From: Podarcis tiliguerta
Lineage: Eukaryota
Assembly (NCBI GenBank): GCA_965153285.1
Contig: OZ229110.1
DNA length: 64,000 bases
Reading direction: 5' to 3' (one strand)
Part shown: positions 8,482-47,087 of the stretch, one piece after another
Layout: the number at the start of each line of letters is the position of its first letter
How positions within the stretch are numbered: the first letter of the stretch is position 1
Notes under the pieces: generated by a model
What the model was told of the DNA's origin: nothing
Databases searched by the model: none
The model's input: the letters and a program-made list of their open reading frames with translations, nothing else
Made by a program: the position numbers and the translations under genes

Positions 8482-9510
8482 TCAGTTTAAAGCCCTCCTG
8501 ATGAGGTTTCTTAGTTTTTTGGCAAAAACATTCCTCCCAACCGTTGTGAGGTGCAGCCCATCGCTTGCCAGAAGTCCATCCTCAAGAAACTGCAGTCCGT
8601 GATCTAAGAATCCAAACCGTTCCTGTTTACACCAGTTGCGAAGCCAGCTGTTTACTTCCACTATTTTCCTCTCTCTCCCTGGGCCACGTCGTTCAACTGG
8701 GAGGACAGATGAGATGACGATTTGTGCATTTAATTGCTTCAATTTCCTGCCCAGAGCCTCGTAGTCTCTTTTGATCTTCTGGAGGCTATTGCTTGCAGTG
8801 TCGTTGGTTCCCACATGAACCAAGAGGAAGGGGTATTTGTCAGTGGGTTTTATGATTCCTTGCAGTCGTTCAGTTACATCTTGGATCTTAGCCCCGGGGA
8901 GACAGCACACTTCCCGAGACATCTTGTCAGGCCCACAGATCACTCCTTCTGTTCCCCTCAGTAAGGAATCCCCTATCACCACTACACGCCTTCTCTTAGG
9001 TTTGGTCAGGGTTCTTCCGTGAGCGGTCCGTTCCAAGGTCGCCTGCACATTCCCTGAGGACTGACTTTGCTGCTCATCTTCATATACGTGATCGACTGTA
9101 ATGAGGGAGAGATCCTCAAATGGAGTCTGCTCTTCGTCTTCCATGCTAGGGGAGAGGACCTCAAAGCGATTGTGTATTTCTAGACAATCAGAGCGAACCC
9201 TGGGCCTCCTACTTCTTTGAGTCACGTTTCTCCACATATCGGGCTCCTGTGTTGGTGAACTAGCCTCCTTCTCAGGGGAGTCCCCTGTCTCCTCCTTGGT
9301 GGAGACGGTGTGCTCTGTTGCTTCCAAGAAGAGCTCCAGCTCTCTAATTCTTTGGAGCGTAGCTACACGTTCCTCCAGTTGCTGGACTTTGTCTTTTAGG
9401 AGGGCAATCAACATGCAATTGCTGCACGTAAAGCTGCCTGCAACCTTTGGCAAGATGGCAAACATTGCGCAGGAACCGCAGGCGACTGCAGCTGTTCCCT
9501 CCCCCTCCAT
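8482..9510 (-). CDS. CR1 ORF1: zinc finger/coiled coil + SGNH (GDSL) esterase
   Basis: CxxC...CxxC N-terminus, heptad region, IGDSL, GTND and DGLH motifs; ATG start. Confidence 0.92.
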
Positions 9511-9591
9511 CTTGAGAATGTGTCGTTGGGCTTGAGACTAGCTCCCCTAAATCTGAAAGATGGTTCAAACTGCGCGCGCCGATAGGCGCGC

Positions 9592-12454
9592 GCCGCTGCC
9601 CTGCAAACACTGATAAGCTCCTCCCACAGCTAATCACCTGCCTCAACAGAAACCCTGCCCCCTCTGACCTTTGACCAGGGAAAGCAGCTAATCAGCCACA
9701 AGAATCACACACACAAGAAACCCCTTTTGGCTCCTTCTTCAGCCGCTGCCCTGCAAACACTGATAAGCTCCTCCCACAGCTAATCACCTGCCTCAACAGA
9801 AACCCTGCCCCCTCTGACCTTTGACCAGGGAAAGCAGCTAATCAGCCACAAGAATCACACACACAAGAAACCCCTTTTGGCTCCTTCTTCAGCCGCTGCC
9901 CTGCAAACACTGATAAGCTCCTCCCACAGCTAATCACCTGCCTCAACAGAAACCCTGCCCCCTCTGACCTTTGACCAGGGAAAGCAGCTAATCAGCCACA
10001 AGAATCACACACACAAGAAACCCCTTTTGGCTCCTTCTTCAGCCGCTGCCCTGCAAACACTGATAAGCTCCTCCCACAGCTAATCACCTGCCTCAACAGA
10101 AACCCTGCCCCCTCTGACCTTTGACCAGGGAAAGCAGCTAATCAGCCACAAGAATCACACACACAAGAAACCCCTTTTGGCTCCTTCTTCAGCCGCTGCC
10201 CTGCAAACACTGATAAGCTCCTCCCACAGCTAATCACCTGCCTCAACAGAAACCCTGCCCCCTCTGACCTTTGACCAGGGAAAGCAGCTAATCAGCCACA
10301 AGAATCACACACACAAGAAACCCCTTTTGGCTCCTTCTTCAGCCGCTGCCCTGCAAACACTGATAAGCTCCTCCCACAGCTAATCACCTGCCTCAACAGA
10401 AACCCTGCCCCCTCTGACCTTTGACCAGGGAAAGCAGCTAATCAGCCACAAGAATCACACACACAAGAAACCCCTTTTGGCTCCTTCTTCAGCCGCTGCC
10501 CTGCAAACACTGATAAGCTCCTCCCACAGCTAATCACCTGCCTCAACAGAAACCCTGCCCCCTCTGACCTTTGACCAGGGAAAGCAGCTAATCAGCCACA
10601 AGAATCACACACACAAGAAACCCCTTTTGGCTCCTTCTTCAGCCGCTGCCCTGCAAACACTGATAAGCTCCTCCCACAGCTAATCACCTGCCTCAACAGA
10701 AACCCTGCCCCCTCTGACCTTTGACCAGGGAAAGCAGCTAATCAGCCACAAGAATCACACACACAAGAAACCCCTTTTGGCTCCTTCTTCAGCCGCTGCC
10801 CTGCAAACACTGATAAGCTCCTCCCACAGCTAATCACCTGCCTCAACAGAAACCCTGCCCCCTCTGACCTTTGACCAGGGAAAGCAGCTAATCAGCCACA
10901 AGAATCACACACACAAGAAACCCCTTTTGGCTCCTTCTTCAGCCGCTGCCCTGCAAACACTGATAAGCTCCTCCCACAGCTAATCACCTGCCTCAACAGA
11001 AACCCTGCCCCCTCTGACCTTTGACCAGGGAAAGCAGCTAATCAGCCACAAGAATCACACACACAAGAAACCCCTTTTGGCTCCTTCTTCAGCCGCTGCC
11101 CTGCAAACACTGATAAGCTCCTCCCACAGCTAATCACCTGCCTCAACAGAAACCCTGCCCCCTCTGACCTTTGACCAGGGAAAGCAGCTAATCAGCCACA
11201 AGAATCACACACACAAGAAACCCCTTTTGGCTCCTTCTTCAGCCGCTGCCCTGCAAACACTGATAAGCTCCTCCCACAGCTAATCACCTGCCTCAACAGA
11301 AACCCTGCCCCCTCTGACCTTTGACCAGGGAAAGCAGCTAATCAGCCACAAGAATCACACACACAAGAAACCCCTTTTGGCTCCTTCTTCAGCCGCTGCC
11401 CTGCAAACACTGATAAGCTCCTCCCACAGCTAATCACCTGCCTCAACAGAAACCCTGCCCCCTCTGACCTTTGACCAGGGAAAGCAGCTAATCAGCCACA
11501 AGAATCACACACACAAGAAACCCCTTTTGGCTCCTTCTTCAGCCGCTGCCCTGCAAACACTGATAAGCTCCTCCCACAGCTAATCACCTGCCTCAACAGA
11601 AACCCTGCCCCCTCTGACCTTTGACCAGGGAAAGCAGCTAATCAGCCACAAGAATCACACACACAAGAAACCCCTTTTGGCTCCTTCTTCAGCCGCTGCC
11701 CTGCAAACACTGATAAGCTCCTCCCACAGCTAATCACCTGCCTCAACAGAAACCCTGCCCCCTCTGACCTTTGACCAGGGAAAGCAGCTAATCAGCCACA
11801 AGAATCACACACACAAGAAACCCCTTTTGGCTCCTTCTTCAGCCGCTGCCCTGCAAACACTGATAAGCTCCTCCCACAGCTAATCACCTGCCTCAACAGA
11901 AACCCTGCCCCCTCTGACCTTTGACCAGGGAAAGCAGCTAATCAGCCACAAGAATCACACACACAAGAAACCCCTTTTGGCTCCTTCTTCAGCCGCTGCC
12001 CTGCAAACACTGATAAGCTCCTCCCACAGCTAATCACCTGCCTCAACAGAAACCCTGCCCCCTCTGACCTTTGACCAGGGAAAGCAGCTAATCAGCCACA
12101 AGAATCACACACACAAGAAACCCCTTTTGGCTCCTTCTTCAGCCGCTGCCCTGCAAACACTGATAAGCTCCTCCCACAGCTAATCACCTGCCTCAACAGA
12201 AACCCTGCCCCCTCTGACCTTTGACCAGGGAAAGCAGCTAATCAGCCACAAGAATCACACACACAAGAAACCCCTTTTGGCTCCTTCTTCAGCCGCTGCC
12301 CTGCAAACACTGATAAGCTCCTCCCACAGCTAATCACCTGCCTCAACAGAAACCCTGCCCCCTCTGACCTTTGACCAGGGAAAGCAGCTAATCAGCCACA
12401 AGAATCACACACACAAGAAACCCCTTTTGGCTCCTTCTTCAGCCGCTGCCCTGC
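9592..12454 (-). repeat. Tandem array of 19 apparently identical 150-bp monomers plus a 13-bp partial, forming the CR1 5' UTR
   Basis: Unit GCCGCTGCCCTGCAAACAC...CTTCTTCA recurs at 9592, 9742 ... 12292, with partial at 12442; lies inside the CR1 TSD. Confidence 0.95.
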
Positions 12455-12534
12455 CCTGAGGACAAGAGGTACAGTACCTCAACAAATGGATAGTTTGTTT
12501 ACCTCTAATTATTTCAATCACAGCTTTATCATAA

Positions 12535-12909
12535 CTTTGTGGTTCAAGGACCCCCGACCCCCGTGAGGTGGAAATAAACACACAAGGACGCGTGGTATAA
12601 GGTTTATGGGCAAGGAAAAGGCCACAACTTTATTGGTTACTGCAATGCAAAAGGTATTGGCTTAGGCATTGGATGACCACAGCAGAGGGGTTGAATCATC
12701 AGGGGGGTAGACAGAGCCAGTTGATGCCTATCCAACTATAGGCTCACCCCTGATGTCACCGGGGTCGTGCCATGGCCTCCAGCCAAGCAGGCATCGGACA
12801 GAATACACGACCGCCGGATTCCTTTAACGGAATACCCAAATCGAAGGCGTAGGCGATGGCCACACCTAGCCTTCCCACACAGCATAACACCCAAATCCAA
12901 TGCCTAACC
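12535..12909 (-). repeat. Ngaro repeat B2 (375 bp)
   Basis: Matches 13308-13682 at offset 773; minus-strand AATAAA at 12629-12634. Confidence 0.93.
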
Positions 12910-13087
12910 TACCCACCAATACCACAAAAGTTGTGACGGTTGCTACGAGGTAGGCGAAAAAACCCATAGGCCTAATGCCAACAGGAAAAACTCCTACCAG
13001 GCCCCCAGACAACCGGGCGACCAACCTAAGGTCCATAGCAAGGCCAGAAGAAACCTGAGCCCTGAGCTAGAGGGAGTGGAGGGTGGG

Positions 13088-13309
13088 TGACTCTCGAAGC
13101 GGCTGTGAAGAAAGAGGGTGAGGAGGGGGCCGGCGCCAGCATATATTCCGGGTTCAGCCCGCCCCCTTGTGGGCGGCTCCAGGTGGGAGCCGCCTCCTGG
13201 GCGTGTGGCGCCGGCCAGGTGAGTTGGAGGAGGCAGGGGCTCCCGCCCCTGCGTGGGCGGGTCGGAGCTCCCGTCCACAACCACTCCCCTCCCTCTGGGA
13301 GGAGAGTCT
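13088..13309 (-). repeat. Ngaro repeat A2 (222 bp)
   Basis: Matches 20565-20786 at offset 7477; GC boxes and TATA-like GAATATAT. Confidence 0.93.
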
Positions 13310-13682
13310 TTGTGGTTCAAGGACCCCCGACCCCCGTGAGGTGGAAATAAACACACAAGGACGCGTGGTATAAGGTTTATGGGCAAGGAAAAGGCCACAA
13401 CTTTATTGGTTACTGCAATGCAAAAGGTATTGGCTTAGGCATTGGATGACCACAGCAGAGGGGTTGAATCATCAGGGGGGTAGACAGAGCCAGTTGATGC
13501 CTATCCAACTATAGGCTCACCCCTGATGTCACCGGGGTCGTGCCATGGCCTCCAGCCAAGCAGGCATCGGACAGAATACACGACCGCCGGATTCCTTTAA
13601 CGGAATACCCAAATCGAAGGCGTAGGCGATGGCCACACCTAGCCTTCCCACACAGCATAACACCCAAATCCAATGCCTAACC
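13308..13682 (-). repeat. Ngaro repeat B1 (375 bp)
   Basis: Matches 12535-12909. Confidence 0.93.
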
Positions 13683-13717
13683 GCCACCCGAGCCGAAAAG
13701 GCTCGCCGCCAATACCC

Positions 13718-14292
13718 TCATAGCCGTAACCAATCCCTAACATTCCTGATTACGCTGTCCAACCATAAGTCATTCCCCTTGTCCGTTAGGTGAACCCCGT
13801 CATCCCGGTATAAGGCGCCATCGCCTATCCGGATGCGGTCATGACTGATAACTTGGCCATACAAGAAGCGCACCCAGCGGGACACGGCCCGGTTCAGAAC
13901 TCTTCTGGATCTTTCAATGGCCATACAATTCTGCGCACCGCGCCAAACAGATCTTTTCAGGAGGGATGACCAAAACAACGTCGTTCCGGGGCACAAAGCC
14001 GCAATTTCATCGATATCAGTCCTTATGGCCCAAGATAAGTCCACGCTTTTTCTGTTCACAAGATCATTCTCGCCCAACTGAATGATCATAATGTCTGGGG
14101 GGCCGAATGCTGCCACCTTCGCCCTCAGCAAGGGCATAAGTTCCTGCCAGAGCATGCCTCTTCTGGCGTACCAATATACACGTACTCCTGGGTGCAAGCC
14201 CAGGTTGACGGTGAGGCCCCGGCTGACGGCTCTCTTGTGGGCCCAGTGAACAATACTGTGGCCACAAATCCACACGGTCTTCGTGAAAGCCA
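13718..14292 (-). CDS. Ngaro SGNH/GDSL hydrolase (open frame extends to 14500; domain starts after a splice acceptor at 14293)
   Basis: VWICGHSIV (block I), RRGM (block II), QLGEND (block III), DDGVHL (block V). Confidence 0.85.
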
Positions 14293-14348
14293 CTACGAAA
14301 ATGAAGGAGAGAGAAAAAGGGTAAGCAGGGAGAAGAAATAGGCCCAAA

Positions 14349-15254
14349 TTAGCGTATGTAAGACTTATAAGCGTTAGACTTCCAGCGGCCCAATTCCTTA
14401 ATTCTATCAGCAGGCAGCCCCAAGCACGCGGCTGTCGTGGCGGCACCGATCCTAAATGAGTGCGCCGCGTAATCCTGTGATGGTAAACCGCACGCGTCAA
14501 TGGCCTTGCGAAGCACCCTAGTGAACTGGTGCCTCAACAGAGGAGACCCGTCCTCATGGACCAGCAGTGGACCCGGACCGGGAGGGCGCAGGCGGAGGAA
14601 TCGTCTAGTATCCTTAACCGGGCATGGCCCAGGCTCCGCTGAAGCTGTGAGTTTTATTAGGACCCCCCTACCGGCCTGATCCGTCTTAGACTGGCGGATC
14701 CGGACGGTCATGCCCGCTTCGGACAAGTGGACATCCTCCATCAGGAGCCCGCGCATAGCGCCATTTTCCGCCGCCTCGGCCACCACCTCGCCTACCCGGA
14801 GGGCGCCGAAAAAGGCGATGGCGAAGGCAGCCGAAAAGAGTCTGGCCTCAAACTTGGACCTGCAAATTGACCTTAGCTTTTCCCGTATCTGGCTGAGCAG
14901 CCCATATGAAATTGGTTTGCGGCCTGCCGCTCTGGATGGTTGAGATCTACCCCATCCCTCTATTGCTCTACGAACTAGGAAGTCACAGCAAGGGTCGGAG
15001 GCAAATGTCGCTTTGGAGAAAAAACTGATGGCGGCCGTATGTATTTTTAAGGTTTTAGAAGCTCGCCCCAAGTCGTCCAGGTGTGCTAAGTATTCTAATA
15101 CGTCATCAGTGGTGGGTGGCACGCCGGCGGGTTGCCCCGATACCCTGACCCTAAAGCCCAGGAAATCGCACCAGGCCCTCTTGTAGGACCTAAGAGTGGA
15201 AGGCGCGATAGACGCTAATACTCCCTTGATCACTTTGCGTCTCCAACGCTCCAC
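14349..15254 (-). CDS. Ngaro tyrosine recombinase
   Basis: FFGALRVGE, SKTDQ, HSFRIGAAT and GRWKSNAYKSY catalytic motifs; no ATG near the 5' end. Confidence 0.93.
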   Translation of the reverse strand: MERWRRKVIKGVLASIAPSTLRSYKRAWCDFLGFRVRVSGQPAGVPPTTDDVLEYLAHLDDLGRASKTLKIHTAAISFFSKATFASDPCCDFLVRRAIEGWGRSQPSRAAGRKPISYGLLSQIREKLRSICRSKFEARLFSAAFAIAFFGALRVGEVVAEAAENGAMRGLLMEDVHLSEAGMTVRIRQSKTDQAGRGVLIKLTASAEPGPCPVKDTRRFLRLRPPGPGPLLVHEDGSPLLRHQFTRVLRKAIDACGLPSQDYAAHSFRIGAATTAACLGLPADRIKELGRWKSNAYKSYIR

Positions 15255-17134
15255 AGGTGCTCCGGAAAGGGTTCGGGCAACAGTTGTGCTCCAGGTGCTA
15301 GCGACCGGAAGCGGGACATCTGAAATCGAGACAAAGCATCAGCGATGTTATTATCCACCCCGGGTACAAATTTAGCTGAAAAGACTATATTATACTCAAG
15401 ACACCGGAGGACGAAAGATCGCAGGAGGGCAGAAACCCTTGCTGATTTTGATGATTGCCTCGCCAAGATTTTTACCACTGCCTGATTGTCAGACCTGAAG
15501 CACACCCGGCGATTTCGGAACTCCTCTGTCCAGATGTGAACCGCTACTGCTATAGGGAAGAACTCGAGGAAAGTAAGGTCACGAGTGATGGCGGTCCCTT
15601 GCCAGCTCTGCGGCCAACGCTGAGCGCACCAACGACCCCGGAAGTACACTCCAAAGCCTAAAGAACCTGCTGCGTCGGATTGGACCTGGAAGTCTGAGGA
15701 AAGGTTAGTAACGTCCTGCCACAAAGAGACCCCATTGTAGTGTTCCAAGAACATAGCCCACACCTCCAAGTCCGACTTGATTGACTTAGGGAGACGGACT
15801 CTGTGATGCGGGTACTTAAGGCCTGCTGATAGTCTAGCCAGCCGGGCGCAGAAGGGGCGCCCTGGGGATACTACCCTACATGCAAAGTTGAAATGGCCTA
15901 GAAGAGACTGAATCTGCCTGAGTGTGATCTTTGTGAGGGTAAGGGTGGACTGTATCATTTCCTTGAGGTTGCCAATTTTTTCCTCAGGTAAGCGAGATGA
16001 CTGGGTGACTGTGTCTAGCTCGATACCGAGGTATGTGAGGCGTGTGGCCGGGCCCTCCGTTTTTTCTGCCGCCAGGGGTACTCCCAAGTCCTGCGCTAAG
16101 GCTGAAAATGCCTGAAGGAGTGAAGCACACTCCCCAGACCCGGGCCTGCCCACAAAGAGAAAATCGTCTAAATAATGTGTGACCCCAGTGGAATTTGTCC
16201 TAAACCTCAAAGCCCAATCCAGAAAGGTACTGAAGGACTCGAAAGCCGAACAGGCGACTGAGCAGCCCATCGGCATGGCCCTATCTACGTAATACTGACC
16301 CCTGAATTTGAAACCCAGCAACCAGAAGTCCTCGGGGTGAACCGGCAGGAGGCGGAAGGCCGATTCAATATCACATTTTGCCAAAAGGGCTCCCTGGCCG
16401 AAAGTCCTAATTAACTTAACCGCCTGGTCGAACGTGGCGTATTTTACTGTGCAAAACTCCGGCGGAATGGCGTCATTCACTGATCCCCCTTTTGGATATG
16501 ACAGGTTGTGGATGAGGCGGAATTCCCCCGGGGTCTTTTTTGGCACAATACCCAATGGGGATATGTGAAGATTTGGTATGGGAGGCTTTTCAAAGGGGCC
16601 CGCAACCCGGCCTGCGGACACCTCTTTGGCTATCTTCCTTTCTGCGACTTCCGGATTCATCCTAACTGATTTCTGATTAGGGGAGTCCCTGGCCAACAGG
16701 TGGCCCACAACCGGAATGCGAAACCCTAACGAAAAACCCTCCCAAAGATATGATGCTGCCGTTTTGTTGGGGTACTGTGCTAGTAACTCGTGAAGGGGGG
16801 TCAACTTAATAGGGGAAAAAGCCATTTCCAACCTCACCTCACCTTCTGTTCCCGGATCCGGGGGCTCCCCTGGAACTGGTATGATGGAACCCCCGGCCTC
16901 CACGAAAGGGCTGTTTCCCTCCTTTAAAACAGGTCGTCGCAGGATGAGCTCCGGCGCACCTCTCACACTCGTGAGGGTATTTGCATGCTGGCCGCTGACA
17001 GGAACCTTTATTAAACTCCCAACATACCCTGCGCCTAAAGTCCCTTCTGGGATCTGCCCTGGCAACACGCAAAGAGTCGCCCTGTCTCTCCTTGACATAT
17101 GGGCCCACTGCAATTGACCAAATACCGTTCTCAA
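15230..17134 (-). CDS. Ngaro reverse transcriptase / RNase H
   Basis: KCDIESAFR, MPMG, HYLDDF; RNase H SDAAG, LEFFP, SDNQA, NIADALSR; start uncertain (ATG at 16825 is one candidate). Confidence 0.94.
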   Translation of the reverse strand: MRTVFGQLQWAHMSRRDRATLCVLPGQIPEGTLGAGYVGSLIKVPVSGQHANTLTSVRGAPELILRRPVLKEGNSPFVEAGGSIIPVPGEPPDPGTEGEVRLEMAFSPIKLTPLHELLAQYPNKTAASYLWEGFSLGFRIPVVGHLLARDSPNQKSVRMNPEVAERKIAKEVSAGRVAGPFEKPPIPNLHISPLGIVPKKTPGEFRLIHNLSYPKGGSVNDAIPPEFCTVKYATFDQAVKLIRTFGQGALLAKCDIESAFRLLPVHPEDFWLLGFKFRGQYYVDRAMPMGCSVACSAFESFSTFLDWALRFRTNSTGVTHYLDDFLFVGRPGSGECASLLQAFSALAQDLGVPLAAEKTEGPATRLTYLGIELDTVTQSSRLPEEKIGNLKEMIQSTLTLTKITLRQIQSLLGHFNFACRVVSPGRPFCARLARLSAGLKYPHHRVRLPKSIKSDLEVWAMFLEHYNGVSLWQDVTNLSSDFQVQSDAAGSLGFGVYFRGRWCAQRWPQSWQGTAITRDLTFLEFFPIAVAVHIWTEEFRNRRVCFRSDNQAVVKILARQSSKSARVSALLRSFVLRCLEYNIVFSAKFVPGVDNNIADALSRFQMSRFRSLAPGAQLLPEPFPEHLWSVGDAK

Positions 17135-18323
17135 TCTGGTCCCAGCGCGCAGTAGGGATCCTAGAGGCCTTTCTACGGAATTTTTTATCGTAGCTTATCG
17201 CAGCGGCCTCCCCAGAGAGGGCATAAGCGGTACGGATGTGCGAAAGATAAGCAATTAAATGGACCGCCCTCTTGGGATAAGCGGCGACTATGGTTCCCAT
17301 GAAGGCCTGAAAGCCATCGAGCCAATTTTCGAAAGTTCTTGGCACAGAGGGGTACTTACTCTTCCTCTTGCCATGGGAGGGCCTCCTTTCACCCCTCCCT
17401 AATTCCTCCACCGGAGGGACTAGTTTAAACATGTCCACAAACTCTCCATTTAGAATTTTTGCACGCAATTTGGGGGAGAGATGATCTCCAGGGATCACAT
17501 CGGAGGTTGAATAAGTGGAGGCTGGGGAATCTTTTAGCAGGGCCCCATCCTTCCATTCCAGAGTGCCACCAAACTTTTTTCTGTGAGAGTTGGCCCGCCT
17601 AGCAATGGCCCAATCAGGGAGACCTGAAACCCCCTCCCCCTTGCCCCAATAGGATCCCAGGGAGGCGTCGCTATCATAGTCTGATGTGGAGCTACCTGTC
17701 TCATCGTCGGTGTCGCTCTTTTTGGACTTTGACCTCTTGCAGGTGTGCTTCTTCTTTTCCCGTCTCTTGCCAGCTGGTTTTTCCTCAGGTAACCGGCCGG
17801 GTGTCTCGTCCGCGTCCTGCTGCTCTTCGTCCTCCGATGAAGAGATTGGCTCTGTTCGTTGCACCCTGGACCGCCTGTTCTGAACACAAGTGGTAGAGCT
17901 GGACAAGGAAACCTTATCAGCACGCACAGACTTGTTGGACGCCTTACCCCCTCCATCTCTAGATGTGGATGTTGACGTCTGGGCTCGTGATCTGGTCCGC
18001 ACGGGCTCCACCCTGCCTGTCGCGCCCGCCCTTGCCAGTTGTGTGTTACTGAAGAGGGCGGCGGAAGTGCTGGGAAGTTCCTCATCGGGAGACGATCGGG
18101 GGCTCTCCGGGACCACCTGTGTATCCGGGATTGCCTCAGGGGAAGACGGGGGGCTGGGATTCTCCTCCGGGAAGCGCTGTTCGTATTCATCTATAAAAGA
18201 TCTGAAAGCTTGGAGGAAATGAGAGACAGGTTTTGGGGTGCTGCTCTTTCCCTGTGGTCTCCCCGACGACTTTGCCACTGCACTGCGTGCTGCATCGGTC
18301 GCACGCTTCCTTTTTGGAGCCAT
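16839..18323 (-). CDS. Ngaro gag-like ORF1 with C-terminal Cys/His zinc fingers
   Basis: ATG at 18323 (MAPKRKR, NLS-like); FENWLDGF core; CWEFNKGSCQRPACKYPHECERCAGAHPATTC; overlaps the RT frame. Confidence 0.85.
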   Translation of the reverse strand: MAPKRKRATDAARSAVAKSSGRPQGKSSTPKPVSHFLQAFRSFIDEYEQRFPEENPSPPSSPEAIPDTQVVPESPRSSPDEELPSTSAALFSNTQLARAGATGRVEPVRTRSRAQTSTSTSRDGGGKASNKSVRADKVSLSSSTTCVQNRRSRVQRTEPISSSEDEEQQDADETPGRLPEEKPAGKRREKKKHTCKRSKSKKSDTDDETGSSTSDYDSDASLGSYWGKGEGVSGLPDWAIARRANSHRKKFGGTLEWKDGALLKDSPASTYSTSDVIPGDHLSPKLRAKILNGEFVDMFKLVPPVEELGRGERRPSHGKRKSKYPSVPRTFENWLDGFQAFMGTIVAAYPKRAVHLIAYLSHIRTAYALSGEAAAISYDKKFRRKASRIPTARWDQIENGIWSIAVGPYVKERQGDSLRVARADPRRDFRRRVCWEFNKGSCQRPACKYPHECERCAGAHPATTCFKGGKQPFRGGRGFHHTSSRGAPGSGNRR

Positions 18324-18619
18324 GTGAGAAGCGGCACCCGAAAGGCGGCTCACAGCTATTATTATTTTACTGTTTATTAATGCGTGTTATTGTTGCTATT
18401 AGTATACGTTAAAGTCTGTATCTGTCTATCTATCTATTTACCTTCTCTCTATTCAACTATCTGTCCAAAGTGTGTATGGATGTAAGCGTGTGTGTGTGTG
18501 TGTGTGTGTGTGTGCTAATTATCTAAATCAGTATAAATATTGCAGTGCGTGTGTGAAAGTAGCGTGTGTGTGTATGCGTGAGTGTGTGTGCGAAGTTGTT
18601 ATTAATCAAGGATTAAATA

Positions 18620-18854
18620 NNNNNNNNNNNNNNNNNNNNNNNNNNNNNNNNNNNNNNNNNNNNNNNNNNNNNNNNNNNNNNNNNNNNNNNNNNNNNNNNN
18701 NNNNNNNNNNNNNNNNNNNNNNNNNNNNNNNNNNNNNNNNNNNNNNNNNNNNNNNNNNNNNNNNNNNNNNNNNNNNNNNNNNNNNNNNNNNNNNNNNNNN
18801 NNNNNNNNNNNNNNNNNNNNNNNNNNNNNNNNNNNNNNNNNNNNNNNNNNNNNN
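18620..18854. other. Assembly gap (235 N) inside the Ngaro 5' leader
   Basis: Run of N next to (GT)n-rich sequence. Confidence 0.99.
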
Positions 18855-20564
18855 TGGTATGTACCTCTGCTTATTTTCCCAAAGAGTTGACTATTAAATT
18901 GCGTGTCAAATTGTTAAATCATAAAGATCTTCAACAAATGAACTGCAACTCAGCTAAATTCCGTATCCAAATAGCTTAAATTCGTCCCTTCTATTTGTAA
19001 ATTTTTATTTTTTTTTTTTAAATGTTGTTATATGATGTATCCAACCCAAGCAATCTGGTGACTCACAGCAATGAACTAGATATCAATATCAAATTAAACC
19101 CCAGTAAATCTAAGAAACTGTGCTCTCAAGCCTGCTCTCTGGCAGCCACCAGCACCCCCGATGTGATGGCCTTTTGCTACAATATTAGGTAGCAGCCAAG
19201 GGAGGTGAAGCTACTGGCAACTCTGTAACAATGACTTGGCTGTCCACGTGGGATCAATGTGTCTATAGCTTGGAACTCCAGCAATCACTCAGCAATCAGT
19301 GAACAATAGCCTAGCTACCAAGGACAAAAGGTGCAGCTGCTCGGCAGCAATGTAACAAAAGCCTGGCTCCAAGTGATCCGACAATCCTCAGCAATCAGCG
19401 AACAATAGCCTGGCTGCCGGGTTGCCTAGCAACCAAAGCGTCTAGCTGGGGAGGCAGTAGGCTCAGAAAGCAGGAAGAATAAACTGCTCCCAACAGTATC
19501 GCAAACACCCAGTAAACAGTGTAAAATACAGCAGAGTATAATAGCTAGGCAATCAGTTCAGCAGTAGGCTGGCCGTTCAGCAATAAATGTAAAATTGCCC
19601 AGCCCTCAATTCAGTAAGCAGGCTGTGCTGGCTGCTGCAATTGCTTAGCAAATAGCGAAAAGGAAATGATGTGGGGGGGGTGGGGGGTGGGGGGTGGGGG
19701 AAACTTCGCTGGGCAGGAGCGCAGACTAAGGCCAGCAGCAAACACAGAGCAAAACCAGATCGAAATTGTAAGGGCTCCCCAAGCTTTAAATTAACGTATT
19801 ACCACAAATAACTAACAGGACACAAAGAAGACAAACACAAAGGACATAAACCTAACAGAAACCTAAACACAGCAGAAAACAACAGAAATGGTGTGTGAAA
19901 TTAATCCTAACAGAAAACAAACAGGCACGGGAAGACAAAAAGGCACGGGGGCGGGTACACACACTGCACGTGGCAATGTTTCTGTTCTATGCTAAGCACC
20001 AACTGCAGATGAACCGCTTGCGTTCCCTCACCCAACGTGCTGATAGGGAAACCTACAGATTCCTACAGGCAGATACCCCCCCACGGGAGCAGATTATTTG
20101 CTAGGGGCGCCTGCCGCCAGAAACACAACCTAGACAGCCACAATGGTAAAGACAGGGAAGCACAGAAGCAAAGTTTCCCAGAGGAGAATGGGTGGGGGGG
20201 GTAGCAGGGTTAAAGCAACGGGGAAGGAAGCTGAAGCAAAGGCAGCAAAAATGCAAACAACGGCAGAAGCAGGGTCAAAGCAATGGGCACTCACACGGGA
20301 GGTAAAACACTGGCTGGTTAAAGGGGGGGGTCGCTTTTCCAGGCAGCAAATGCTGTATGAAGCTTATAAATCAGGAGGAAACACAAAGCGCTGTTGCAAC
20401 AACAGTAACAAAGGAGAAACGTACACCAAGGGCTCACACACACACTGGCCCCTCAGACTGCACACTCTAACCATACGACTCACAAGCTAGCCAGAGTCCA
20501 CCCCCCTAACCACGTTAATACTTCCCTGGCTTCTGTGCAGCGTAGATGCTCCTCCTGAGGATCT

Positions 20565-20786
20565 TGACTCTCGAAGCGGCTGTGAAGAAAGAGGGTGAGG
20601 AGGGGGCCGGCGCCAGCATATATTCCGGGTTCAGCCCGCCCCCTTGTGGGCGGCTCCAGGTGGGAGCCGCCTCCTGGGCGTGTGGCGCCGGCCAGGTGAG
20701 TTGGAGGAGGCAGGGGCTCCCGCCCCTGCGTGGGCGGGTCGGAGCTCCCGTCCACAACCACTCCCCTCCCTCTGGGAGGAGAGTCT
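20565..20786 (-). repeat. Ngaro repeat A1 (222 bp), 5' terminus and probable promoter
   Basis: Matches 13088-13309. Confidence 0.93.
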
Positions 20787-21911
20787 CTACCAAAAAACAA
20801 CAACAGCTTTATCTATTGTATAAGGAAATCAGACACTTAATTTGTTTATTCAGTACATTTATTTCCTGCCTTTCAAGGTGTCATGCATAGTTATCCCCCA
20901 CTCCTTTTTTTTAATCCTCACAGATATTAGGTAACCTTGTAGTTGAATCTGGCTCGAAATTAGGACCATGTAGAAGGCACATCAGTGGGATTGCTAATAA
21001 GGCATTGCTCAAAAATGGCTGTTGTTTCAGGTTTCATAAGCCTGGACTACACATGAGCCAAGCTACACATGATGCTGAGTTGCATATAGTTTTTTGCCTT
21101 GAAGTGGGATATTTTACTTTACAAATCTATCTTGGGGTGGTGGTATCTTTATGTGAAAAAGAAGTTCTGTGCAGAGGGAAGATGGGAAAGGCTTTAAAAG
21201 CTCCCATCTCCAGTGTTTTTCCCCCCTGGGATCTCAAGAGGTAGTGGGGGAAATCAAAACCCTGTAAGTGCAGATACCAGTACTCCCTCCCTGGGGGACT
21301 TTGGGGGAGAGAGCTACTGAAAGGGTAAGGGGTCAAAAGCCCCATTCCCCATACTGGTCTTCTACTTGATATTGTAGCCTCTGCAGCTGCATTTGGTGGT
21401 GTTGGGGCTTATGGCAGAACTTCCAAGTTTGGCGTTGAAAGGTATGTAGATTATGAGAATGTCACCAGAAAGTTAGTCATATCTCTGTTTCTCTTCAAGT
21501 TGCTCAATACCCTTCTGAAACAGAGAACAGCTGAGACACTTGAGAAATGAGTTGCTAACTGTCACTCCATGAACAAACAAAAAAAGATGTATCTTTAAGA
21601 ATATCATCCAGTTATTAAGGCTGACAACACAGCCATTGTTGTGGCTGTATTGTGGTAAGCTGAATTTTTTGCAGGTTGTCCCAGAGTGGCAAGATTCTCT
21701 CTGGATTCACATGCAGGCACCTCTTCAGATCATAATTTGGCCACAAACTGGAAGCCATTTGAAATGTGTGTTATGACAAGCTGTGACTTTCACTAGATAA
21801 TTCCACTGTGCCAGAACTGCCTGGAAACATCAATTTAGGGTGATTTTGTTATGCAAGAACAGCCCTAAGAGAGCCTCTTTTGTAAAGTAAATAGATAAGT
21901 AGGGGTGCAAT

Positions 21912-22245
21912 ATAAGAACAGCCCTGCTGGATCAGACCAAAGGTCCATCTAGCCCCAACTCCCTGTGCTCACAGTGATCAAGCAACTGCCTATGGGAAGC
22001 CTACAAGAAAGGCATGAGTATAATAGCACTATCTGCTTATGATCCCCAGGACAATATTTAGAGGCATCTTGTCTTGGTTCTGGGAGTAGTCCTTGGATGG
22101 CCATCATGACTAGTAGCCAATGATAACCTGAGCCTTTGTGAATTTATCTAGTCCCCTTTTAAAGCTTCCCAAGTTTGTTGCCATCTCCACATCTTGCACA
22201 AGCAAATTCCATAGTTTATCTGTGTCTTTGCTGGTACAGGGTAAA
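21912..22245 (-). mobile_element. Old, decayed CR1-type 3' fragment
   Basis: TAAGAACAGCCCTGCTGGATCAGACCAAAGGTCCATCTAG end motif; residual LWN...FKRGLDKF peptide; similar decayed copy near 24060-24310. Confidence 0.5.
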
Positions 22246-41660: not shown

Positions 41661-42059
41661 GTATCTCGTGTTATACATTTTGCATGTTAACAAGCACATT
41701 GTTTTAGTGACAACTAAAGACTGCAATTGATGTCATGTTGTGAAAGAACATGGTGTCTTCAGGTTTGAAAATAGGCACATAGTCATTGACATCCCAGGCT
41801 TCTTTATTTATTTATTCAAATAATAATAATAATATAAATAAATAAATAAAAAATAAATAAATAAATAAGATTTAGGCATACAATTGTCAATACAAACTTC
41901 ATTTTCCAGGGACAACTAAATGGAAAATATTCCATTTGCCGGAATAATAGAATATGGACTTGAGGCTAAGAGCTATAGATTATCGGCATGCACAAAAATC
42001 TGTTCATTTTCCTTTGCATTAGGTTAAAAGGCCTGTTTCTTGCAGTGAAAGCCAGTTAC

Positions 42060-42815
42060 GTGACGAGTTCCCACCTCCCCCCATAGAAATAAAGACACAG
42101 ACACAAGAATTCGAGTTAATGGGTCAAATTAGGCCACAACTTTATTGATTACATTGAGTGGTATTGGCTTATGCATTGGTCCTACAACTAACCGGCCTGG
42201 CCGGTGAGGGTTAACCACCAGTGGGAGGAGTCCTGCTGAGGCACGTCAACTAGGACCTCCCCCGGGGCCACCGTGTGGGGGCGTGCCATGGGCCCACACC
42301 TCCATAGGCTTAGGACGAGGCCACGCCCCCCGGAATCCTTTACCGGACTACCCTTTATTTGGGGGAAGTGGATGGCGCTCCTTCCCCCCTTCATCTGCAT
42401 AACAATAAAACAGTACCCCCACCAATGGCTAACCGCCAATACCGTGGAGTTGTGACGGTTTGCTACAAGGTAGGCAAAAACCAAATGGCTGTTGCCAATC
42501 TGCCAGTTGGAAAAATTCCTACCAGGCCCCTTGACGGTGACCAACCGAGGTTCATAGCAATGTCCAAGAACCTAGCCTAACGGGTGGGAGGGGAGGGAAA
42601 ACCAGGTCAGCTGTGGTGCGGGAAAGAGGGAGACCCTTGGCCGCGCCAGACCTAAGTAGGTGAGGCCACGCCCCCTGCGCCAGCCGATTGGCTGGCTCGG
42701 GATATGACGCTTCCGAGGATTCCCTGCTATCGCGTGGGGCTGGAGCCAGCCCCCACAAGTGTGGGGTAGGGGCGTGAAGCCCGCAACCCACCTCCTCCCT
42801 AGCTCGGAAGTGGAT
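42060..42815 (-). mobile_element. Solo A-spacer-B terminal module of a diverged Ngaro subfamily
   Basis: Collinear shared blocks with 12535-13309 (AGGCCACAACTTTATTG, GGTATTGGCTTA, CGTGCCATGG, AGTTGTGACGGTT, TCCTACCAGGCCCC); TTAC at both ends. Confidence 0.8.
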
Positions 42816-43519: not shown

Positions 43520-44352
43520 GTAAATTTCTTGTTTTTGTGACTCAGTTCTTCCTGAGGAGGCTGGCCAATTCTTTTATTTAAGAAATTCAGGAGTAGAATA
43601 TCCTAATTGTGGGATGTCAGGCGTGTTTGTATGAACCCCCACAATGAACATATAACAACAACAACATTTTTTTATTTATACCCCACTCATCTGGCTGGGT
43701 TTCCCCAGTCACTCTGGGTGGCTTCCAACTGAATATTAAAAACAATAAAGCGTCAGACATTAAAAACTTCCTTAAACAGGGCCACCTTCAGTTGTCTTTT
43801 AAAAGTAAAATAGTTGTTTATTGCCTTGACATCTGCTGGGAGGGCCTTCCACAGGGCAGGTACCACTACCGAGAAGGCCCTCTGCCTGGTTCCCTGTAAC
43901 CTCACTTCTCACAGCGAGGGAACCGCCAGAAGGCCCTCGGTGCTGGACCTCAGTGTCCGGGCTGGATGATGGGGGTGGAGACACTCCTTCAGGTATACTG
44001 TGTAGCAGACAGCTGGTCATGCCCCTCTCATGCCAGCATGGATACTGTCCCCATTCCCACAGCTGTGAACACCTGGTGTTAGTGAGAAGGGGGCCCCGCA
44101 CACCCACTGACATTCAGCATTAGCAAGAAAAGTACCCCATGCATGTTCAGCAGTAAGTCTATCAGACTCCACAGCTGAGAACCCTGAGCTCACACATTGG
44201 GGTTTCTCTGCCTTCTGTTTGGATTGGATTCAGATTCTTATCTTAAAGTTACAAAGGAATTAATTCACTACTTCCTTCATGTTGTTCAAATTCATTAGGT
44301 AAAGATAGTTGTTTTGAAGCAGAATTGAAAGCTGCTTCCTTAAAACCAAGTA

Positions 44353-44594
44353 CAGTGGTACCTCGGGTTAAGTACTTAATTTGTTCCGGAGGTCCGTTCT
44401 TAACCTGAAACTGTTCTTAACCTGAAGCACCACTTTAGCTAATGGGGCCTCCTGCTGCCGCCGAGCCACTGAAGCACGATTTCTGTTCTCACTCTGAAGC
44501 AAAGTTCTTAACCCGAGGTACTATTTCTGGGTTAGCGGAGTCTGTAACCTGAAGCGTATGTATCCTGAAGCATATGTAACCTGAGGTACCACTG
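44353..44594. mobile_element. Tc1/mariner-pogo MITE
   Basis: TA-CAGTGGTACCTC...GAGGTACCACTG-TA. Confidence 0.85.
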
Positions 44595-44812
44595 TATGGA
44601 TTTTACCTGAAACCAAGGAGAATACAGAGAAGTGTCTAGGGCACAACTTAAGTATAAATAAATATTTCAAATGTGGCCTACGTTGGTGGCTGGTCCAGCT
44701 TAGGAAAAGGAAGCCTGATTAATCCAGATTCCAAAATGCTGGAAGTACTAGAAAAAACATGATGTGGCTTTATAAACATTACCAAATGCATTTCTCCCCC
44801 CTTTTGGAATAG

Positions 44813-44966
44813 ACAATATCAGCTGGAAAGTGCTTTAAAGCTTTTTGAGTTTTTCCATGAGTGCAAAGAAGAGGAGCTTTGGCTGTCTGACAAACTGAAG
44901 CTGGTGACAGCAGGACACTTAGGACGTGATCTCAGTCACATTACAGCCTCTCTTCAAAGCCATAAG
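44813..44966 (+). CDS. SPTBN5: SPTBN5 exon, spectrin repeat (LFEFFHECKEEELWL)
   Basis: AG/GT, 154 bp. Confidence 0.9.
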
Positions 44967-44994
44967 GTTAGTGATGTGTAAATTCTTGGTCGCT

Positions 44995-45358
44995 TGTGCA
45001 GGTTTTAGAGGGCTTTCAGAATTTTCTAGCAGAAATATACTCGGAGTCACGTAGTGATTTCATGCTCTTTATTGCATCTCGTAAAACACTGAATGAATTT
45101 CCCCCCAGACCTCAGGCTTTATATACATTATTTACACAATGGGTTCCGCCTGATTGGCTGATTCTGCTTCCCTCCTGGAGCCTGGTTGGGCTGCTCCTGC
45201 AGGCCAATCAGTTGTTGCATTCTAGGATCCTACCTGCCTAATAGGCTGATTAACCAGCTCCTGGGGTCTAATTGGTTTGCTCCTGCAGGCCAATCAGGTT
45301 GTTGCATTCTAGAATCCTACCTGCCTATTGTTCTAGGATCCAAGCTCAGTACATAACA
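44995..45358 (-). mobile_element. Probable solo LTR
   Basis: Minus strand begins TGTTATGT, with internal repeat carrying CCAAT boxes, TATATAAA and AATAAA in LTR order; left boundary and TSD unresolved. Confidence 0.5.
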
Positions 45359-46226
45359 CTGTTTCTAGTAGCATAGATACTAAAGTGCACGTTCAAAAGA
45401 TTTATAACAGTTCTAAAAAGGGGTGGGGTGGGAACTGGTGGTGAACTGATGTAAGATCTTAATATTATAAAACTCTTTACCGATGAAATGGAAAACTGTT
45501 AAAGATATGAGGTCAAAGTAACTTACAAATTTACCAATATTGCTTGAAATGTGCAGGCATAATCAGCCCAGAGCCAGTGAAATTGACTGATTGTACTCTT
45601 CTGTTTCAAGAGGTCTAGGCAGACAATGGTATCACCCTATTTGCCTCTTGATTGGTTTAGCTAGTTTGATGTGACAAGAACAAAGAAGCCTTGAGTTAAA
45701 CAATCAAATTCTAAAAGTGACTTGTTTATTTCTTTCTTCTTTTCTTTTTCTGAAATGTTATTTTATTTGTTTGCCTCCTTAAGGGTTGTGAGGGTTGGAT
45801 TTGTTAGAAACACTGTTTAATTTGCTTATGTGGAACAGTATACCCCTATTGTTGCATTTGTGATATGCAAATTGGTTTTAAAAAAAAACCCCAGGCCATA
45901 GCCAATTTGCCTGATAGCCAAATTCCTACCTGGAATGGTTTTTTTCCTACAGCAACCACCACAGCCATAGCAAGGTCAAATCAATAAGTAAAATGCAAAA
46001 TTAATGGAATGGGTGGATGGGTTGTGTTAGCAATTTCACGCCTCCAAGGCTGCACTTTGTGATTAGTGGAAATCACACGGTCTGTCTGAGAGGAAGCATG
46101 AGAACCTGATATAGTCTTATCTGTATGTATTATATGATGTACTTTCACTTTTGCCTGTTCTCTCTCAGAGCTGGATGAGAAAGAGCACCATGATTCCTTG
46201 TCTGTGTAATACAGTGTCAATAAATA

Positions 46227-46452
46227 CAGTGGTACCTCGGGTTAAGTACTTAATTCGTTCTGGAGGTCCGTACTTAACCTGAAACTGTTCTTAACCTGAA
46301 GCACCACTTTAGCTAATGGGGCCTCCTGCTGCTGCCACGCCGCCGGAGCACAATTTCTGTTCTCAACCTGAAGCAAAGTTCTTAACCTGAAGCACTATTT
46401 CTGGGTTAGCAGAGTATGTAACCTGAAGCGTATGTAACCTGAGGTACCACTG
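46227..46452. mobile_element. Tc1/mariner-pogo MITE, same family
   Basis: Same TIRs and TA TSD; similar body to 44353-44594. Confidence 0.85.
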
Positions 46453-46821
46453 TAGTAGTTCAGAACTACGATGCCTCTTTCTTTTACTGTGTCAAGAGAG
46501 GCGGCTAGTGTGCATAAATCAAGTTGGTTTATGTCACTAGAGCACCCTGGAGAAGAACAGGGTGCCTTTTCCAGAGCTATGCTCACCGGAGGACACTCAG
46601 AGATTGGGGAGGGGTGCTGCTGATACCCCAGAGAGTTTTCCCAATATGGTAGCAGAACTGATGAAAAAGAGCGGGTGTCGGGGGCCGGTGCAAACTGTTT
46701 AAATCCCCCCTGGGAGCTGACCTGAAGGAAGCCTGATTTTTCCCTCAGGCCTGCCTCCAAAGAGCCCTGCCCTCTGCACCAGCCAGCCATTGGCCAATTT
46801 GGCAGGCTGGCATGGAGCCAG

Positions 46822-47087
46822 ATTCTAGGATCCTACCTGCCTAATAGGCTGATTAACCAGCTCCTGGGGTCTAATTGGTTTGCTCCTGCAGGCCAATCAG
46901 GTTGTTGCATTCTAGAATCCTACCTGCCTATTGTTCTAGGATCCAAGCTCAGTACATAACACTGTTTCTAGTAGCATAGATACTAAAGTGCACGTTCAAA
47001 AGATTTATAACAGTTCTAAAAAGGGGTGGGGTGGGAACTGGTGGTGAACTGATGTAAGATCTTAATATTATAAAACTCTTTACCGAT
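46822..47087 (+). repeat. 266-bp direct duplicate of 45219-45484
   Basis: Apparently identical at offset 1603. Confidence 0.9.

Follow-up and report, generated by a model that had tools for sequence, protein, structure and literature searches.

Does the interval 12535–13309 of the window, by which we mean the whole 64,000-nt stretch of Podarcis tiliguerta DNA that was analysed, hold a separate gene for a highly structured non-coding RNA of about 500 nt, as a sequence-only reading had proposed, or is it part of the retroelement on whose minus strand it lies? The analysis identifies the interval as the usual 3′ terminal repeat module of a lizard Ngaro element (DIRS order), which is young and apparently intact. 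That this normal 3′ end additionally carries a cis-acting 3′ RNA signal, in a block of about 430 nt, is judged to be rather probable.

On the minus strand, the element is arranged in the order A1, four ORFs, B1, A2, a unique 178-bp spacer (S) and B2. The 5′ terminal repeat A1 (20565–20786; 222 nt) and the internal copy A2 (13088–13309; 222 nt) are 100% identical, as are the internal copy B1 (13308–13682; 375 nt) and the 3′ terminal repeat B2 (12535–12909; 375 nt). B1 adjoins A2 with the dinucleotide AG in common and is preceded by GGTATTGG and a small hairpin after the hydrolase stop codon. The spacer between A2 and B2 (12910–13087) matches, within the window, only itself and one diverged solo copy and is without a second copy in the element, so that its uniqueness, as claimed in the sequence-only reading, was confirmed. 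A1 contains GC boxes and a TATA-like box and is presumed, from these motifs, to be the pol II promoter of the element. B2 contains an AATAAA signal at 12634–12629, followed by a GU-rich tract; the AATAAA block was found in 3 copies in the window (B1, B2 and the solo copy) vs 0 expected.

Four overlapping ORFs (whole span 13718–18353, minus strand) were located between A1 and B1. The gag-like ORF (18353–16839) was taken from the ORF list, and the reverse transcriptase (RT) ORF (17134–15230) was identified by Pfam RVT_1 (E = 1.4e-11, 45 bits against a cut-off of 29.6). The putative tyrosine recombinase (YR) ORF (15254–14349) was assigned from weak Pfam matches (Phage_integrase and Phage_int_SAM_4, a SAM-like N-domain; E = 0.002 each, both under the Pfam cut-offs) together with its position and order, which are as expected for Ngaro. 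The GDSL/SGNH hydrolase ORF (14500–13718) was matched by Lipase_GDSL_2 (E = 5.7e-07, 30.6 bits against a cut-off of 32.9); its best relatives are unnamed lacertid lizard proteins carrying PF13472, from Podarcis muralis (71% identity) and Zootoca vivipara, and a gecko protein was likewise among them, from which a squamate host follows. A methyltransferase domain was not matched by Pfam in any ORF of the element. Upstream of the gag-like ORF, a 235-base N run (18620–18854) lies inside the element, and its 5′ untranslated part is therefore incomplete in the assembly.

The split direct repeats with 100% identity, the RT, YR-like and GDSL matches and the agreement with the A1-[ORFs]-B1A2B2 scheme published for Ngaro, whose amphibian members also have the hydrolase ORF (PMC9210276, PMC8547959, PMC4157794), together assign the interval to the 3′ end of a Ngaro. 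The likeness comprises the repeat order, A1 = A2, B1 = B2, B1 adjoining A2, and the combination of RT, putative YR and SGNH hydrolase known from amphibian Ngaro. The Ngaro schemes that were consulted show A2 directly followed by B2, whereas here 178 unique bases lie between them, including the best-conserved and best-folding part of the module. The spacer may already have been described in the original Ngaro literature (Goodwin and Poulter 2004).

No target-site duplication was found, as the flanks differ (...GGTAG before A1, TTATG... after B2). The dinucleotide AG is common to the B1/A2 junction (13308–13309) and to both outer ends (20785–20786 and 12535–12536); it may be the crossover point of the recombinase, with chance (1 in 16) as the alternative. 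The segment between the hydrolase stop and B1 (13683–13717, minus strand) contains a small perfect hairpin (CGAGCC-TTTT-GGCTCG context), which has no counterpart at the corresponding place before B2. An array of 150-bp tandem units (9442–12591), of which about 19 are 100% identical, starts within approximately 70 bases of the B2 end. A 62-nt inverted repeat (5483–5544/43100–43161, 100% complementary, arms 37.5 kb apart) is probably explained by some other repeat that occurs twice, once in each orientation.

A diverged stand-alone A-S-B unit (42055–42812, minus strand, ends approximate; S domain at 42564–42456) aligns end to end with A2-S-B2. Using tblastn, no match to the element's proteins was obtained outside the element, and no Ngaro ORF was found near the unit. 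A covariance model of the spacer domain scored the solo copy at 126 bits; in the window, the model returned the two known copies and one weak match only (E = 0.065). This weak match (45861–45977, minus strand, 13.8 bits), in which CCTTGCTATGG and CAGGTAGGAATTT are kept and the 3′ half is not, may represent an old remnant of a related domain and sits inside direct repeats of 1.6–1.9 kb (44348–47087).

To judge by its layout, the solo unit is a solo-LTR-like product of A1 × A2 recombination. Solo AB repeats "reminiscent of solo LTRs" were reported for the Ngaros of Cafeteria (PMC8547959), and SIRE of Trypanosoma cruzi joins the initial 185 bp of VIPER to 220 bp of its 3′ end through an exclusive region of ~30 bp; SIRE corresponds to the A2-B2 region of the VIPER split direct repeats, its origin and mobility having been left open (PMC6681497). 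There is thus precedent for an A-spacer-B unit standing alone as well as for a unique piece separating A2 from B2. The known units, dispersed in their genomes, each combine A with B across a short exclusive stretch, and the unit at 42055–42812 is of the same type. SIRE differs in that its exclusive region is only ~30 bp long with no conserved fold reported, whereas the lizard spacer measures 178 bp and has a predicted fold. On the point of whether the module layout had been described before, the units and the exclusive region accordingly have forerunners, and a description of the conserved fold was not found: a literature search that covered work other than the original Ngaro papers yielded no paper on a conserved fold in the Ngaro 3′ region.

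The minus-strand motifs on which the sequence-only reading was built were all recovered, namely GAATATAT (TATA-like, 13148–13141), the pyrimidine tract, the AATAAA signal and the GU-rich tract. The five helices it listed (12653–12660/12916–12923, 12662–12673/12896–12907, 12697–12705/12747–12755, 12940–12945/13036–13041 and 12949–12954/12993–12998) are without exception perfect Watson–Crick complements. Its description of the interval as full of complementary pairs was borne out by counting inverted-repeat words over 12610–13120 against 500 dinucleotide shuffles: 11 words were found at k = 8 (shuffle mean 1.9) and 2 at k = 12 (shuffle mean 0.004), the observed value being reached in 0/500 shuffles. 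Directly after the hydrolase stop, the closing partner GGTATTGG was present as described, and B1 is thus able to close the same stem as B2. The helices claimed for the solo copy held in part. Those at 42460–42465/42555–42560 and 42469–42474/42518–42523 are perfect; the third (42160–42180/42421–42443) retains its 8-bp arm, and one compensatory double change and two adjacent mismatches fall in its 12-bp arm.

For the spacer, a four-way junction was predicted on the minus strand (S domain, 12936–13045), in which a closing stem of 8 bp (13041–13034 with 12947–12940) bounds three hairpins. The minimum free energy (MFE) structure has −45.1 kcal/mol and accounts for 19% of the ensemble, and the z-score of the domain is −2.43 on the sense strand vs −1.08 on the antisense strand. 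The solo S domain (42564–42456) folds into the same architecture (z = −1.88 sense vs −0.81 antisense), which survives the loss of 5 nt from hairpin 2 and the exchange of the inner hairpin of hairpin 3 for another. Six G-U pairs, impossible on the opposite strand, are part of the S domain fold. For the 511-nt interval as a whole, the sense (z = −2.59) and antisense (z = −2.62) strands scored alike (solo copy, z = −2.26), and its fold is modest and not strand-specific.

These strand comparisons bear on a reading at the level of DNA, according to which the inverted repeats are sites where the tyrosine recombinase binds or brings about synapsis, or else fold within single-stranded cDNA to prime the second strand or to recombine. 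It would accord with z-scores of approximately −2.6 for both strands of the 511-nt interval and with the single-stranded, mostly linear cDNA of DIRS-1 (PMC7192593); the listed helices, being perfect Watson–Crick repeats, carry no strand information. The S domain itself folds clearly better on the sense strand, with its six G-U pairs, and the conserved span described below stops at an RNA landmark, the poly(A) signal, instead of reaching the element end, where recombination must act. A DNA-level signal is for these reasons considered distinctly unlikely.

B is closed by a predicted long-range stem (minus strand). Its 5′ arms lie at 12896–12923 (12923–12916 and 12907–12896) and are the complements of 12660–12653 and 12673–12662; the corresponding 3′ arms (12653–12673) are located immediately upstream of the poly(A) signal. 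The 8-bp closing stem of B is present in the MFE structures of B2, B1 and the solo copy, and an internal partner competes for the 12-bp arm in the MFE structure of the full copy. A degenerate third 3′ stem-arm motif was noted inside B (12785–12797, minus strand); in the MFE structures of B1 and B2, the 12-nt 5′ arm pairs with this motif instead of its perfect distal partner, an alternative that is not kept in the solo copy.

For the comparative test, the two copies were aligned by sequence anchors (13045–12650 vs 42564–42157, 65% identity), and this alignment was used in place of a plain MAFFT alignment, which misplaced the stem arms for RNAalifold. The two-copy consensus folding energy was −95.7 kcal/mol, and column shuffles placed the sense strand at z = −7.2 and the antisense strand at z = −5.3. 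Covariation was close to chance: 12/34 changed base pairs (35%) are still paired, compared with 24–48% in partner-slid controls, a count from two copies only. Changed pairs being at chance level, the structure signal comes from conserved complementary blocks and not from covariation. Positions 12983 and 12965, which pair with each other, read U-G in the window copy and A-U in most family contigs, one double change at the consensus level; the third common contig difference, at 12967, opens a pair.

Chance-level covariation in two copies, along with single-sequence z-scores that are modest (−1.9 to −2.6), is what would be expected if the module had no function and its helices and conserved blocks stemmed from shared ancestry, a G+U-rich composition and chance. 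The excess of inverted repeats, seen in none of the 500 shuffles, speaks against this view, as do the junction architecture kept through indels and a replaced inner hairpin, and the retention of the blocks in four organisms in which neither A nor the greater part of the ORF was seen. The absence of any function is hence regarded as very unlikely.

The conservation that these arguments draw on was determined in two ways. Between the full and the solo copy, identity is 73% in the S domain and 76% in the block of 3′ stem arms and AATAAA, followed by 65% in the B interior, 62% in the B tail after the poly(A) signal and 59% in A; shuffle controls for these segments gave 52–55% (54% for A). In addition, Logan contigs with a likeness of at least 80%, from runs labelled as four different organisms and made from DNA or from material of unstated kind, were compared over 12401–14500; their depth is not copy number and cannot rank gene parts, and they show presence, not absence. 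All four organisms have many distinct contigs on 12611–13100 and on B1, and 35, 17, 45 and 16 contigs, respectively, carry the family letter at 12965. For three of the organisms (B, C and D), 0 contigs were found on the A core (13101–13170), and long stretches of the hydrolase ORF carry very few, if any, both in presence-only data. Contigs of all four organisms also pile up on 12401–12470, in the tandem array near the B2 end. The conserved span extends over ~430 nt from the closing stem of the S domain (13045–12936) through B to AATAAA, leaving out the promoter repeat A and the B tail; its end at the poly(A) signal is presumed, from the position of this motif, to be the 3′ end of the genomic RNA.

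Against this background, the proposal of a separate gene was weighed. It would require a transcript of ~500 nt, driven by A2 and running from ~13120 to 12610, which serves in trans as primer, template or packaging partner for RT and YR, the solo units being further copies. B2 does supply an AATAAA signal, and A2, which equals A1, would be able to fire if A1 is a promoter; a complete stand-alone A-S-B unit exists, and the primer of the DIRS order is not known. The promoter-bearing A is, on the other hand, the least conserved part, close to its shuffle control, and its TATA-like box has been lost in the solo copy; contigs of three other organisms on the A core numbered 0 in data that show presence only. 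Stand-alone A-spacer-B units are expected from recombination between A1 and A2 and have been described (PMC8547959, PMC6681497). A2-spacer-B2 is the defining Ngaro 3′ end, and the same RNA sequence would already be part of any read-through genomic RNA; Rfam, moreover, gave no match. A separate non-coding RNA gene is consequently held to be unlikely.

The larger number of distinct contigs on S and B than on the ORFs, in four organisms, could also be explained by a short non-autonomous repeat, in which the S+B block is an abundant SIRE-like or SINE-like element that is mobilised in trans by Ngaro proteins and merely shared by the full elements. SIRE of VIPER offers a precedent for this. A solo A-S-B transcript would be without the B1A2 junction that is needed to rebuild the ends, no tRNA-like or other pol III head was found, the sense strand contains T5 and T6 runs, and contig depth is not copy number. 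Such a repeat is considered quite unlikely.

Known RNA families were screened with Infernal/Rfam. No match at E ≤ 1 was obtained over 9000–22000; with Rfam 15, the module and the solo copy reached at best 7–24 bits against gathering scores of 51–99, including self-cleaving ribozymes and retron ncRNAs, and nothing came near any gathering score. ARAGORN detected no tRNA gene in the window. With no known RNA family or tRNA found, the ribozyme and retron-like readings put forward for the interval were dropped; the helix-rich spacer and B are matched by no known RNA family, and no LTR-type tRNA primer-binding site (about 18 nt complementary to a tRNA 3′ end, beside a repeat) was recognised that would explain them. 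The sole TGG-led conserved tract (12998–12983) is itself one arm of hairpin 3, and a tRNA pairing with it would have to carry a non-canonical G at position 61. A conserved spacer pattern of 26 bases had 0 matches in metagenome, prokaryote-genome and viral collections, and a protein-guided metagenome scan found no relative. A coding reading of the module was also tried and rejected, as the 134-aa ORF across A2 and the spacer has no Pfam match. Regarding 5′-3′ cyclisation, the longest complement of the 3′ region to the 5′ leader is 8 nt, which is typical of shuffles.

Taken by its position and conservation, the ~430-nt block most likely represents a cis-acting 3′ region of the element's genomic RNA, a reading that follows from the exclusion of A from the conserved block. 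The spacer behaves as a well-folded, conserved RNA-like domain in prediction and is a reasonable candidate for the replication signal of the element. We infer the limits of transcription from the motifs: A would act like U3 with a short R, providing promoter and start site, and B like R with U5, having the poly(A) signal ~275 nt in and then a tail that would not be transcribed. B1A2 would be an internal copy of the circle junction through which the ends are restored. As this replication model needs the B1A2 junction in RNA, it requires a read-through genomic RNA, which would carry the B1A2 junction, the spacer and B2; a second gene would not be needed, because such an RNA already contains the spacer and B2.

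Within this RNA, the long-range stem of 8+12 bp would close B and put the spacer domain next to the poly(A) signal. The spacer, being located upstream of B2 only, may favour the poly(A) site of B2 over the identical site of B1, so that B1 would be read through. A2, equal to A1, may well be active in the way that a 3′ LTR can be. In DIRS-1, reverse transcription has no known primer, the RT works in trans, and single-stranded, mostly linear cDNA is produced (PMC7192593). An RT that works in trans without a known primer implies that a cis signal must exist. For the Ngaro element we infer a corresponding role at the RNA level: the RT/Gag of the element, acting in trans, would recognise the block when selecting the template and starting minus-strand cDNA synthesis.

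Comparable arrangements are known from the 3′ UTR stem-loops read by stringent LINE RTs, from hepadnavirus epsilon and from retroviral packaging or poly(A) upstream elements, with which the Ngaro block shares a conserved, structured, non-coding 3′ region of the template RNA and an RT acting in trans. It differs from them in having no sequence or Rfam similarity, its role being deduced from position and conservation only. The likeness to retron msr/msd is loose and consists of a structured non-coding region adjoining the RT and bounded by inverted repeats; the Ngaro element is, by contrast, eukaryotic, of pol II type and equipped with a poly(A) signal, its structured region lies downstream of the RT, and neither a branching-G context nor an Rfam retron match was identified. 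A further-reaching proposal, which we consider tentative and rather unlikely, is that the spacer junction and the stem-closed B form the initiation site of reverse transcription in Ngaro and DIRS-order elements. Folded at the 3′ end of the RNA, they would bind the RT and hold a primer (self, protein or host RNA) in place, in a role comparable to hepadnaviral epsilon or retron msr. The same region would then also be transcribable alone from A2 or from solo units, and the short RNAs could compete for the RT or feed it in trans.

For the DIRS order, it is not known how cDNA synthesis of the retrotransposons is primed and how the template is chosen (PMC7192593). The compact fold of ~110 nt predicted here sits in the sole unique non-coding segment of the 3′ repeat module and is kept across diverged copies and contigs of several organisms, unlike the promoter repeat. 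It is thereby a concrete, mutable target for retrotransposition, RT-binding and structure-probing work. A-spacer-B units in lizard genomes should not be annotated as new genes but as ends of Ngaro elements or as solo units.
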